Origin: Octopus sinensis
Lineage: Eukaryota
Direction: 5' to 3'
Length of the DNA: 64,000 bases
Assembly: GCF_006345805.1 (NCBI RefSeq)
Contig: NC_043002.1
Location: 96,658,001-96,722,000 of the forward strand
Both the position numbers and the translations under genes were made by a program. Shown here one piece after another: positions 2,114 to 60,352 of the stretch (its first letter is position 1; each line of letters begins with the position of its first letter). The notes under the pieces are model-generated. The model had not been told where the DNA came from. It saw only the letters and a program-made list of their open reading frames with translations, and did not search any database.

Positions 2114-2127
2114 TTACCGAACAAGGC
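2114..2127 (-). CDS. Gene A exon 4 coding part: (C)LVR-stop, then 3' UTR
   Basis: Follows a 101-nt intron; acceptor gggatag|GC CTT GTT CGG TAA. The split codon T|GC is Cys. Gene C has the same peptide end. Confidence 0.6.
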
Positions 2128-2228
2128 CTATCCCATTTGAAACAAAGCAAATATAAACCTTCGTTGGGATTTTGATACATTAAACACGTAGTGAAGCGAG
2201 GACAGGAAAACTTTTATTGTCAACTTAC

Positions 2229-2367
2229 ACAAACTTAATTGATTTACTGCCAATTCACCATTTACCCACGTGCATATTTTCCTGGTACAAGTACTGAACT
2301 TCTTTTCCAGCCATTCTTCTCCGTTATAGCGGCAAACATCGTTGGTCAGACATACATGTCCATAACA
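2229..2367 (-). CDS. Gene A exon 3: Cys-rich mature peptide CYGHVCLTNDVCRYNGEEWLEKKFSTCTRKICTWVNGELAVNQLSL
   Basis: Acceptor tttttatttcaag|, donor T|GTAAGT. Lies inside ORF 2128..2385. All five Cys plus R, G, W, L, K, T, K are conserved with paralog 55726-55863. Weak resemblance to VWC/beta-MSP-type C-x-G-x2-W-x-C modules (inference). Confidence 0.75.
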
Positions 2368-2825
2368 CTTGAAATAAAAATACATATATTATGATAATAT
2401 CTACTAAGTAATATAAGATATTTTACAATACAGTAATATAAGTAATATAAGATATTTTACAATACAGATTTTTTATAAACTAGGAGAGGTAAAGATGGTT
2501 TTAGTGATATCCAACAGAGATCATATATTTTGGTTCCTTCCAAATCATATATGAAATTCAGTCGGATCTTTTACCTCTTTCCTGGATCTTGTTTTGGATA
2601 AGACAAGTACATGAGAGGAGTATATTGATACCAATTTAATGAACAGATACGTTCCTCTATAAAGATTTCTCCTATGCACAGGCGTCGTTTGGAAAGACCA
2701 AAAGCCTTCGGTGTCAAGTGTAACATTGCATAAAATATAGGAAACTCCGGTACTCAGGTTTCGGTGTAGACTTTATTTGCTGGCTACAATTTATGAACGC
2801 TAAAAAATAAAGCTATAATAATAAC

Positions 2826-3580
2826 GGTTTCTACTGTCCCGAAAAAAGATCGTTTGAGGAACACTAGAAATCGGGAGAGGCATCTGCCAAGAGAAATGCC
2901 TCTTAACACTGATCTTTTTATTGTGCTTGGTACCAGTAACACTGAGGAAAGCAATGGCTGGGTATGTATTCAAAAGCCGCCAACCAAACGTCAAACACTT
3001 GTTTTTCATGGATGACCTCAAACTTTATGGTAAAGATGAATCCCAAATCAGTTCCCTCGTTGATAAGGTGCATACTTTCAGTGCTGATATCAGAATGGAT
3101 TTCGGACTGAAAAAGTGTGGTGTGTTAGTCTTGAAGAGAGGCAAAATCAAATGTACGGACGGACTAGCGATAACAATGGCACATGTTATGAAACAGATAA
3201 AAGAGACGGGGCTATAAGTAATTGGGGCTATTGGAAATGGATAAATTAATAGAGAAAGAAATGGCAGAAAGGCTAAGGTTGAGTTCTTACGCAGACTGAG
3301 ACTGATACTTAGGTCAAAATTAAGCAGACGGAATAAGATCGAAGCTATCATCGCCTAAACGGTTTCACTCCTTACATATGGAGCAGCGGTAATCACACGG
3401 ACAGTAGATGAACTAAACAGCTTAGATAGAAAGACGAGAAAATTGCTGACTAGATACGTGATACTCTATCCAAAACCTGACACAGACTGTATCTACCAAG
3501 AAACAGAGGAGGAAGAGGACAGATCGGATGCAGACACAGCTTTAGAACAGAAGAAAACAACACAGCATAGAATCTAACAA
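2826..3580 (+). mobile_element. R4/Dong-clade non-LTR retrotransposon RT fragment
   Basis: ORF 2921..3217 contains HLFFMDDLKLYGK and FGLKKCGVL RT motifs. Begins next to a short TAA run. Confidence 0.85.
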
Positions 3581-56264: not shown

Positions 56265-56550
56265 ATAACAATAATAATAATAATAATAATAATAATAATA
56301 ATAATAATAATAACAATAATAATAACAATAACAATAATAATAATAATAACAATAACAATAATAATAATTATAATAATAATATTAGTAATAATAATAATAA
56401 TAACAATAACAATAACGATAACAATTATAATAATAATAATAATGATAATAATAATAACAATAACAATAACAATAATAATAATAATAATAATAATAATAAT
56501 AATAATAATAATAATAATAATAATATAATAATAATAATAATAATAATAAG
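56265..56550. repeat. (TAA/CAA)n microsatellite followed by a probable LINE fragment
   Basis: Direct. The homologous site in gene A intron 2 carries the R4/Dong insertion at 2826. Confidence 0.85.
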
Positions 56551-58348
56551 AGAAATGTTGATGGAGCTGTGAAGGATGAGGAACAAGAACTTTATACAGT
56601 GAACCCTGATACTGTGGTGGTTGGACATGCAGGTTAAATGAACCAACTAGATAATGAATTGCTTGTAATTCAAAGACTGCTCACGGAGGAGATAACACAA
56701 ACAAAAAATCTTGTCCGAGCTATTGCTGAGGAGAAATCACAACTTAAGAAAACAAAAAATGGTGGAGCAAAAAACCGTGGTAGAAAAGATTGTAAGTGAC
56801 ATAATGCGGGCAATTTAAGATCTAGCAATGGTTAAGGGGAAACTGGAAAAATGGGAAAAAGATATATGTATATGTATTCTTTCTTTTATTCTTTTATTTG
56901 TTTCAGTCATTTGACTGCATCCATGCCTGCAGCACCGCCTTTAGCCGAGCAAATCGACTCGAGGCCTTATATATATATATATATATATATATATCGCGTA
57001 TGGTATTTATCGGAAAAACCAGTGGAAAATTGGATGCTTTTCGATCCCTATGAATGAAACTATTTTTTCTTGCATTGATTTCACACACACACACACACGC
57101 ATGTATATATATATATATATATATATATATATATATATATATATATATATATATATATGTGTGGTGTGTGTGTGTGTGTGTATGTGTGTGTGTGTGTGTG
57201 TGGTGTGTGTGTGTGTATAAACGCACATATATACATACATATATACATACGCACACATATGAGAGTAAGTATTCCGGAAACTCTATACACACATTGGTGA
57301 AACTGATCGACAAGCATGTCAAGATACTGAATTTTTTGTTTGTACAAATCATCGATCGCATACACATGTATAAGTGTGCGCGCATGTGTTCGCATGTGCA
57401 CGTGTGTGTACGTATGTATGTGTCTGTGAGTTTGATCGTATATAAAAAGAAGCATTGATGTCAGTGTATTTATAAGACCAGTATCACATAGACGAACTTG
57501 TAAAAATGAATGCGTACGTAAATGAAGGTAATTAATTGCTTTGTGGAGGTGCAATGACCCAGTGGACTTGCGGTCGGAGGATCGCGGTTTCGATTCCCAG
57601 ACCGGGCGTTGTGAGTGTTTATTGAGCGAAAACACCTAAAGCTCAACGAGGCTCCGGGAGATGGTTGTGGCGACCTCTGTTGTACTCTTTCGCCCCAACT
57701 TTCTCTCACTCTTTCTTTCTGTTTCTTGGGTAACGCTGCGATGAACTGGCGTCCCGTCCAGCTGGGGTGAACACATACGCATCAGCAACCGGGAAACCGG
57801 GCCCATGTGCCTGGCTAGGCTTGAAAAGGGCGCAGAAAAAATTATAAAAAATTAATTGCTTTACTGGACGAATTGATCAATTTTAACGGTTTCAATATAA
57901 ATGTATACATTTTGATGTTCAAACACAAAATTTGCTGATGAAGCAAATGTCTATTTATACGATTGCCTTATTGCCTTGTATTACAGGATTGTTAAACCCA
58001 GCAATCTAGGTGGCTCCTTTATAGCAGGTGACAAAGATGAATGATTCTTGTAATAACGAACAGAATTTGCAAGATGGAACGCAGCTGATTATCTAAGCAA
58101 ATTCTACCTGCACCCCCTCCATCTTATTTATCCCACTTTCCTCCTTTATCTTGTAGTCATATGATTATTTGGAACCACGCAGTTCGGAATCTTATGGATG
58201 ATCGCCATATTATATTTTCTATATACTGATTAGGTGATCTTTCAATATATTGTAAAGGAAGCTTTGCACACTGGATGGGAATATATTAATAGAAGACGAC
58301 ATATTTGAAATATATTGCAAGATTCGTCATAATTGAAGTAAATGAAAA

Positions 58349-58915
58349 TCTCTATATGTAAAGCTGAGGTTGTCTGTGTACGGCAGGTTTGGTAGCTTTC
58401 AACTAACACTATCCCCTCCGTGACCCTGCGGCGCAAGTTCACCAAAATTGAGAGTCTGATAGAAGAAGGCTTGCTCTTCCTTCCGTAGAAGAAAAAATTC
58501 AAATCGGACCATGTTAAAATCCCTATTTTTTACTATTTGTAAAGCTGAAGTTGTCTGTGTATGGCAGGTTTGGTAGCCTTCAACTAACACTATCTCCTCC
58601 GTGATCGTGCGGCGCAAGTTGACCAAAATTGAGAGTATGACAGGTTTGCTCTTCCTTCCGTAGAAGAAAAAATTCAATCGGACCATGTTAACACCAAAAA
58701 TTATTTACATCAAAAAGGTGATTTTTTTTTTAATGAAAATCCCTATTTTTTACGATTTTGTGACTGCTGTGTCGCCATTTTTCGAAGTATTTCAACCAGA
58801 AAAATGTTCACTTAAAGATAATAACCAGCTACATAATGCAAAATATTTTACTTTTCAAAAATTCCAATCCTAAAGGGTCGAAACAAACCCGAGCAACGCC
58901 GGGCGACACTGCTAG
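58349..58915 (+). mobile_element. Non-autonomous Helitron with internal tandem duplication
   Basis: A|TC start, hairpin and CTAG|T end; 58350-58530 is repeated at 58545-58740. Confidence 0.8.
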
Positions 58916-60274
58916 TAAACTATATATTAAAAATAATTTCCTATCTCGGAAATCATTGGATATTTTGCACATACAAGCAGCATATATACTTAGACCTGTA
59001 CGTATGTCTGTCTCGTTTGTATTTAATCACTTGAACTCTTCTTTTGGTATGTACGTATGCAGCTATCTGCATATGTATTTATATTCTTCTATTCTTTCAT
59101 TTGTTTTAGTCATCTGACTGCGGCCATACTGGTGCATCAGTTTAAAAGGTTTTAGTCGAAGTCATAGTCCCAGGACATTTTCTTTGTAAGTCTAGTACTT
59201 ATTTTATCGGTATCGTTTGTTGAACTTCTAAGTTACGGAGATGTGAACACAGCAATATCTGTTATCAACAGATGGTGGGGAGACAAACACATACACACAC
59301 ACATACACACATATGTATATATATATATATATATATATATATATATATAATATATATATATATATATATATATATAATATATATATATAATATATATATA
59401 TATATATATATATATATATATATATATATATATATATATATATATATACGACAGGCTTCTTTCATTTTCCGTCTCCAAATTCCACCACAGAAGGATTTGG
59501 TCAGCTCGAGGCTATAGTGGAAGACACTTGCCCATGGTGCCACGCAGTAGGACTGAACCCCAAACTATGTTGTTTGGAAGTAAGCTGTTTACTACACTGC
59601 CACGCCTGCACCTATAAGGAAAAGATTCAATAAGCCCCTTGTAATTACTGGCAAGGATTTAAAACGTCCACTTGTGTGTTATGTTAACACTTTAAACACC
59701 CTTAGGCCACACATATATCCACACAAAGATATACACTCCCATATATAAATGCATACATATATATATATTATTATATAAATATACATACATATATATATAC
59801 ATACATACATAATACATACATACATAAGATACGAAAAGGGACAACAAAACATCCAGATAGACGATGCAAAAAAATAACAAGAATGGGTCATTCGAAGCCT
59901 TTTATCCTCAGTCAAGAACCGGATCATCCTCGCAATTTCGGCTGATAAATCTCAAGATTGCTCCAATCTGGCTAGCCCCAATGAAAATCTAAGCTAAGAG
60001 CATTAGATTACTTGGAAAAAAGCATCGAATGTATACGGAAACAAGGACGGAAAACAGACGATGTTACACGAATATAATACCAATATATATGTATGTATGT
60101 ATGTATCTATGTATATATACATATTCTCAATTCGTGACAATGGAAATGAAATATCGGTAATTGTAACACAATCAAAACACGAAAAGATTGATTGAATAGA
60201 TGAAAAGATTTGGAGATTAGACAATTTCCAAAAGTTTAGTTATTCAGTATTTTCGTATATGATTGGAGACTTAC

Positions 60275-60352
60275 CGGGGTCATGTGGTTCACTTTGAGCT
60301 GTTACTGCTGTCAAAAACAAGAAGCAAAAAAGAAATAGTCGTGTCATAATCA
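60275..60352 (-). CDS. Gene C exon 2: signal-peptide-like exon (xDYDTTISFCFLFLTAVTAQSEPHDP)
   Basis: Acceptor tttctaaatttcag|, donor CCCG|GTAAGT, 78 nt. The hydrophobic frame ends in phase 1, matching the phase-1 start of exon 3. About 75% identical to gene A exon 2 over the first 56 nt. Confidence 0.65.

Follow-up and report, generated by a model that had tools for sequence, protein, structure and literature searches.

The window analysed here, a stretch of 64,000 nucleotides (nt) from the Octopus sinensis genome (NCBI RefSeq assembly GCF_006345805.1, contig NC_043002.1, positions 96,658,001 to 96,722,000 of the forward strand), carries on its minus strand two genes of short exons, A and C. 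An initial annotation of the window described both as genes for small secreted, disulfide-rich proteins, in which a signal-peptide exon and a mature-peptide exon are separated by a long intron filled with transposable elements (TEs), and ascribed to each a six-cysteine peptide of about 50 residues. The first two exons and the cysteine frame of that description are right, and secretion remains the probable fate of the products, but its 3' end, the size of the product and the fold class are wrong. We think it likely that A and C are two tandem, same-strand members of a family restricted to Octopus, in which C encodes a secreted two-module precursor with ten cysteines and A is a diverged paralogue. 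The loci of this family are already known, as unnamed 'uncharacterized protein' entries in the public annotations of two octopus species, and a literature search covering the locus identifiers, octopus cysteine-rich secreted families and cephalopod beta-microseminoprotein (beta-MSP) returned no paper on it. The description of its products as a pair of modules resembling fibronectin type I (FnI) and the accelerated evolution reported below appear to be new. Together these features define an orphan family confined to one lineage, which has duplicated in tandem and evolves rapidly, with a core of about 11 kDa, ten cysteines and a confidently predicted fold.

Exon structure of genes C and A

The exon 2 translations of A and C were combined into a profile of 47 columns, which was searched against 1.84 billion representative proteins. 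Two database proteins were recovered, each matched twice: P0001 (XP_052824406.1, 'uncharacterized protein LOC128248056' of Octopus bimaculoides; 139 amino acids (aa), E 1.2e-12) and P0003 (XP_036359380.1, the 'uncharacterized protein' of LOC115212787 in O. sinensis; 154 aa). A 1018-aa repeat protein (P0002), matched five times in profile columns 18-34 only, was rejected as spurious. A family profile added LOC106872057 (P0004) and LOC128248057 from O. bimaculoides and LOC118763691 from O. sinensis, with E from 1e-34 to 1e-73; neither this profile nor the exon 2 profile found a homolog outside Octopus in the protein searches. Since P0001 and P0003 extend past exon 2, running on after '...SV' into Y/F-C and a second cysteine-rich stretch, P0001 was compared with the window by tblastn, and the missing exons of gene C were found.

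Gene C consists of four coding exons on the minus strand, from 60353 down to about 41665, and encodes a precursor of 139 aa (MIMTRLFLFCFLFLTAVTAQSEPHDPDCHGCYYENKCRKKGQRWLVKEEAICTWKSCVLIGVIQWQIIVLSVYCRKDNGSCIKRDATWVAIEDGVCWTHTCKYLGNRNVRITSKPSRSCLRLKRDLPIANRSQNETSLL). Exon 1 (60275-60353) holds the ATG, the signal peptide (MIMTRLFLFCFLFLTAVTA) and the start of the mature protein, and ends in phase 1 (G|gtaagt); it aligns across six genes, and its counterpart in the O. bimaculoides ortholog lies at 10001-10079 of the LOC128248056 locus (L001). The N-terminus '...ISFCFLFL' of the initial annotation mixed two frames, and the true one, read from the ATG at 60353, is MIMTRLFLFCFLFL. Exon 2 (55726-55863, phase 1 to phase 1) encodes the N-terminal cysteine pair and three of the four cysteines of the first module. 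Its coordinates, AG and GT sites and translation are as had been claimed, as are the position of the exon 1 donor and the corresponding details of gene A given below. Exon 3 (50517-50664, ending in phase 2), located at E 1e-18, contributes Tyr73, Cys74 and the second module (CRKDNGSCIKRDATWVAIEDGVCWTHTCKYLGNRNVRITSKPSRSCLR), and the coding part of exon 4 (41761-41815), also identified with P0001, adds a basic, N-glycosylatable tail, (L)KRDLPIANRSQNETSLL, and the TGA stop. The splice sites of both exons are canonical and their phases fit. An AATAAA at 41665-41670 (minus strand), about 90 nt past the stop, is a probable polyadenylation signal.

The two genes had been thought to end instead in a terminal micro-exon encoding 'CLVR*' (55603-55616 in C, 2114-2127 in A), which the relatives do not use. 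In that model the sixth cysteine was a split codon (T|GC versus T|GT); in the four-exon gene the split codon is T|AT, for Tyr73, and the cysteine comes next, as the first complete codon of exon 3. The reported six-cysteine peptide is therefore the N-terminal cysteine pair plus the first module, with its sixth cysteine supplied by exon 3, and the actual product comprises about 100-120 residues with ten cysteines in two modules encoded by four coding exons. For annotation the lesson is that splice sites alone can give a plausible but truncated product, the correct model requiring exons 5 kb and 9 kb further on.

Gene C and P0001 are both 139 aa long and 67% identical. The LOC128248056 locus is collinear with window positions 60510-40374 through all four exons and much of the intron sequence, and gene C is thus the ortholog of LOC128248056. 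The four related loci compared (L001-L004, the loci of all five relatives save P0004) agree in every exon boundary and phase: exon 1 ends in phase 1, exon 2 ends at 'T|gtaagttgaca', and exon 3 begins with '(A/T)T TGT'. With this family gene C has in common the four-exon layout, the intron phases, the signal peptide and the ten-cysteine scaffold, whereas gene A is without a counterpart among the models retrieved and the frame problem described below is its own. In the O. bimaculoides stretch compared, LOC128248057 lies head-to-head with the ortholog, about 20 kb upstream; gene A sits tail-to-head on the downstream side of C. Neither the window nor the four related loci with their 10-kb flanks yielded a further family copy. 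The expectation that gene finders could miss such genes proved half right, as NCBI has modelled five relatives, in O. bimaculoides and O. sinensis, but the window's own 139-aa product is absent from a collection of 15 billion proteins.

The A and C loci share about 70% nucleotide identity across the exons and several hundred base pairs of flank, and match nothing else in the window; they are therefore a tandem, co-oriented pair of paralogues rather than copies of a dispersed repeat, the origin that the initial annotation itself had named as the finding that would overturn it. Gene A runs from 11106 down to beyond position 1. Its exon 2 (2229-2367) has an open frame and keeps all five exon 2 cysteines together with the glycine and the tryptophan. 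Its first coding exon (11036-11106) is less regular. Compared with the five relatives and C, one base is lacking between the ATG and the hydrophobic core, so that the family ATG (11104-11106) stands one base out of frame with the core and the mature protein; the frame from this ATG reaches a stop after nine codons, and no in-frame ATG was found in the first coding exon. The donor (11036|11035) is one base short, and hence in phase 0 where the family has phase 1, and the exon 2 acceptor is shifted by 2 nt. Together these two changes drop one codon and keep the frame, whereas the base lacking after the ATG is not compensated. Of the family exon traits only the exon 2 donor is shared by gene A, which also departs more than any other member at positions that the rest conserve. 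Exon 3 was sought in window positions 1-2228 and not found; neither it nor exon 4 is in the window, and both probably lie beyond its edge. Gene A is a young pseudogene, or it carries an assembly indel, or it starts in an upstream exon not yet seen.

Modules, predicted fold and rates of change

In the alignment of the five database members, ten cysteines are invariant together with G30, W44, W88, W97 and H99. Gene C keeps all of these residues, and gene A those that fall within exon 2. The resulting architecture is an N-terminal Cys-x2-Cys pair followed by two modules of about 45 residues and four cysteines each, C-x6-W-x7-C-x4-C-x16/17-C, of which the first is encoded largely by exon 2 and is closed by Cys74. 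Compared by hhalign, module 1 (exon 2) and module 2 (exon 3) match at E 7.8e-4, with C37/C81, W44/W88, C52/C96 and C57/C101 in register, and judged by this register the modules are internal duplicates of one another. The N-terminus resembles a signal peptide in its charge, its hydrophobic core (Kyte-Doolittle value about 2) and its V-T-A end, and in gene C the signal peptide has a predicted length of 19 residues. From the cleavage site to the last cysteine the core comprises about 100 residues (11.5 kDa), with an isoelectric point of 8.3-8.9 in four of five members. The tails beyond it are variable and basic and often carry KR or RR and N-x-S/T sites, although one member has almost no tail; the predicted tail of gene C after its KR site is probably trimmed or glycosylated.

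No named family captures these proteins, as the initial annotation had recognized. A word-indexed protein search with the 76-aa short model of C found nothing, and Pfam returned for the short models only sub-threshold noise (Tetraspanin, EB module). The full-length product of gene C, P0001 and P0003 have no Pfam match at E up to 10 and do not reach the gathering score of the fn1 hidden Markov model (HMM; PF00039), and searches of PDB sequences with whole-family and per-module profiles gave nothing relevant. AlphaFold2 models were built from the five-sequence alignment for P0001 and, independently, for a second family member, P0005. In both the core is predicted to be all-beta, with a predicted local distance difference test score (pLDDT) of about 90. 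When these models were compared with the PDB by Foldseek, the top 17-18 matches of each were all FnI module pairs (8-9FnI, 2-3FnI and 4-5FnI), with E down to 1.3e-4, a probability of 0.94-1.0 for nearly all, template modelling (TM) scores by target of 0.42-0.57 and identity of 14-20%. By these matches the predicted models agree with the FnI fold, in which tandem modules each combine a small beta-hairpin with a three-stranded sheet, and the family probably folds like an FnI pair. Because the proteins do not match the fn1 HMM and space their cysteines differently, we do not class the family as a member of fn1.

Gene C and its ortholog were compared for rates of non-synonymous (dN) and synonymous (dS) substitution. 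Over the whole coding sequence dN is 0.205 and dS 0.194, values with few synonymous sites behind them; the signal peptide has a dN of 0.047 and a dS of 0, and the mature part a dN of 0.232. In the mature part 19.9% of non-synonymous sites differ, compared with 11.6% of 2976 aligned non-coding sites (Fisher p 1.5e-4). The mature protein is changing faster than the DNA surrounding it, and the signal peptide is conserved. Exon 2 of A and C shows the same pattern, with a dN of 0.65 and a dS of 0.62 compared with a K of 0.22-0.30 in introns and untranslated regions. In every paralogue the 5' flank and the beginning of intron 2 are conserved.

Upstream exons, intron 2 and neighbouring repeats

A conserved 5' flank, at 60354-60480 (minus strand) in gene C, is common to the six family genes. 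It contains 'tttcag' or 'ttccag' 0-6 nt before the start region (60354-60359 in C and 11113-11118 in A, minus strand; also in L001-L004) and, about 35 nt upstream of the start region, the motif GTTCGATCA. The junction '...IY|VNM' in isoform X2 of LOC106872057 fits 'tttcag' as a putative 3' splice site. Because this junction agrees with the conserved AG, the transcript probably starts not with the 'first' coding exon but with a 5' exon upstream of it. Two repeat copies on the minus strand (15132-15249 and 30835-30952) match the 45-residue N-terminal extension of the same isoform at 72-78% on the protein level. The copy at 15132-15249, which lies on the strand of gene A and 4 kb upstream of it and ends in a canonical donor (TAC|gtaagt), is a candidate 5' exon. 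These matches suggest a repeat-derived alternative 5' exon in the family of LOC128248056.

Among paralogues whose proteins differ by 50-60%, the first ~180 nt of intron 2 (55617-55725 and 2128-2228 of the window, minus strand; L001 16391-16560, L002 13454-13640 and L003 17191-17380) are at least as conserved as exon 2. This stretch could be a splicing or regulatory element, or could merely contrast with the accelerated exons.

Pfam matches bear out the description of the introns as filled with TEs. N-terminal remnants of Mos1/mariner-type transposases (HTH_48) lie in intron 2 of gene C (51698-52063, plus strand) and just upstream of the gene (60614-61036, minus strand), and RVT_1 remnants of non-LTR elements occupy 21667-22161 and 35671-36654 (minus strand) between A and C. 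Two open reading frames (ORFs) of 149 and 325 aa in intron 1 of gene A (3838-6141, minus strand) have no Pfam match. A 486-bp unit is present in two tandem copies of 95% identity at 23691-24661, and a 131-aa ORF at 25636-26031 (plus strand) narrowly exceeds the Pfam cut-off for CDC24_OB3 (26.8 bits; cut-off 25.4) and is probably a repeat-borne fragment.

Rival readings, proposed role and known systems

Several considerations weigh against the interpretation of A and C as members of a rapidly evolving secreted family with an FnI-like fold. The RefSeq models of the relatives are themselves predictions; the fold rests on predicted models from an alignment of five sequences, the TM scores being moderate and the identity 14-20%; and the cysteine spacing does not fit the C-x-C pattern of FnI. 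A dN/dS ratio of about 1 overall would, taken alone, also fit relaxed constraint, and the non-coding rate was measured on alignable DNA only and is hence biased low. A further objection is that exon 2 might be joined in a short isoform to the claimed micro-exon about 105 nt downstream, giving a six-cysteine peptide of about 55 residues that ends in CLVR. The proposed junction has a canonical AG with a pyrimidine tract and a fitting phase in both A and C, its 14 nt (T|GT CTT GTT CGG TAA in gene C) are identical in the O. bimaculoides ortholog, and the isoform would have an even number of cysteines. The conservation of the segment is only that of the surrounding intron, at 76-81% between paralogues and about 90% between orthologs. 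LOC128248057 and LOC118763691 have no stop at this place, so that the frame runs into unrelated sequence, and in LOC115212787 the region has been replaced. The distant exon 3 is used by all five database models, including the orthologous RefSeq model, and module 1 needs Cys74 at x16 just as module 2 needs its equivalent. A short isoform is accordingly improbable, and the segments in C and in A are most likely plain intron.

Decay is a different way of accounting for a dN/dS near 1, which is found between the orthologs as well as between A and C; with the out-of-frame ATG of gene A and the lack of a homolog outside Octopus in the profile searches, it would turn the loci into pseudogenes in decay, or into relics of a duplicated gene that drift neutrally. 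Against this, gene C and its ortholog keep a frame of 139 codons free of indels and stops despite a nucleotide difference of about 18%, and ten cysteines and several glycine, tryptophan and histidine residues are held invariant in the five database members and kept by C, and by A within exon 2. Conservation is much stronger in the signal peptide than in the mature part, and amino-acid change exceeds the non-coding rate, an excess that decay does not produce. Simple decay of gene C is hard to square with hypervariable mature exons set beside introns and a signal exon that are conserved, and with a cysteine frame that stays constant, and for the family as a whole we regard this reading as quite unlikely; for gene A alone, a pseudogene or relic has about an even chance of being correct. 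That the segments are chance-open pieces of a dispersed TE is effectively refuted. The region is indeed rich in TEs, and one relative has an alternative 5' exon derived from a repeat, but only about 2% of shuffled exon 2 sequences keep the frame open, there are just two copies in 64 kb, tandem and co-oriented, the proteins contain no TE domain in Pfam, the ortholog is single-copy and collinear, and no further copies occur in the 10-kb flanks of the four related loci. A last possibility, raised by the initial annotation, is that A and C encode diverged forms of beta-microseminoprotein (PSP94/MSMB) or of VWC/SVWC proteins. The C...G..W...C motif does recall VWC as it is generally known, and size and cysteine number are those of MSMB (about 10-11 kDa, ten cysteines). 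Yet no Pfam match at E 10, to PF05825 and PF00093 or to any other entry, and no PDB sequence match connects the families, the only significant Foldseek matches of the two independent models are FnI pairs, below which there is only noise, and no MSMB or VWC structure is among the top 50 matches of either. The five-member alignment also lacks the C-x2-C-x-C and C-C-x2-C motifs of VWC and the C-x2-C-x-C and CC motifs of the two families as commonly given. MSMB is a secreted protein of about 10 kDa with ten conserved cysteines, in which an N-terminal Greek-key domain is followed by a dissimilar C-terminal domain of two two-stranded sheets (PMC8167871), whereas the octopus protein is a duplicated four-cysteine module. 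In favour of the reading, MSMBs are likewise rapidly evolving secretory proteins (PMC2746217). On balance, membership in either family is very improbable.

If A and C belong, as we propose, to a secreted two-module family, the disulfide-locked core of about 11.5 kDa would be released from the cell and serve outside it as a binder. The typical ligand of an FnI pair is an extended peptide segment, bound by strand addition, and a conserved signal with a fast-changing mature part is the usual signature of secreted proteins that face an outside partner, as in venom, immunity or reproduction. The partner here might be prey, a pathogen, a mate or a conspecific signal that co-evolves with the octopus protein, and such co-evolution would explain mature exons that outpace the introns alongside an unchanging signal peptide and cysteine scaffold. 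From these gene-level features, the odds seem evenly balanced on an outward-facing role of this kind, whether in saliva or venom, in mucosal or immune defence, or in reproductive or chemical signalling, which we do not rank. Lineage-restricted, fast-evolving secreted families tend to supply venom components, immune binders and pheromones. A fuller proposal can be put forward only tentatively, and we think it rather doubtful: that the modules of this octopus-specific secreted family truly share ancestry or fold with FnI and that the family is under diversifying selection and serves as an outward-facing ligand, the protein being, for example, a component of saliva or venom or a contact or waterborne chemical signal like the squid beta-MSP-like pheromone. 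The latter is reportedly a contact pheromone, said to have been described by Cummins et al. in 2011. Were the proposal true, it would give cephalopod biology a new and tractable family of effectors or pheromones and would provide a protostome representative of the FnI fold.

Comparison with known systems separates mode of evolution from homology. With conotoxin-type and other venom or reproductive secretory families, the octopus genes have in common a conserved signal exon and introns, hypervariable mature exons, a fixed cysteine frame and tandem duplication; this likeness is one of evolutionary mode and not of homology, and the octopus mature protein is larger and built of two modules. With the MSMBs the family shares secretion, a size of about 10-11 kDa, ten cysteines, two beta domains and fast evolution with duplications, features insufficient for membership given the absence of a sequence or fold match and the different cysteine pattern.

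The closest structural comparison is with the FnI pairs (among them 8-9FnI in 3gxe/3ejh, 2-3FnI in 2cku/3cal and 4-5FnI in 1fbr/2rky), which likewise consist of two consecutive all-beta modules of about 45 residues, each with four cysteines and a conserved tryptophan, encoded at roughly one module per exon. FnI modules have the arrangement C...C-x-C...C, with C2-x-C3 spacing and 1-3 and 2-4 disulfides, whereas the octopus spacing is C-x14-C-x4-C-x16/17-C, and the additional N-terminal cysteine pair is found in the octopus family only. FnI is not known to occur outside the chordates, and the octopus is a protostome; the predicted likeness may be convergent. If it holds experimentally, the family would be an unusual case of the FnI fold outside the chordates.

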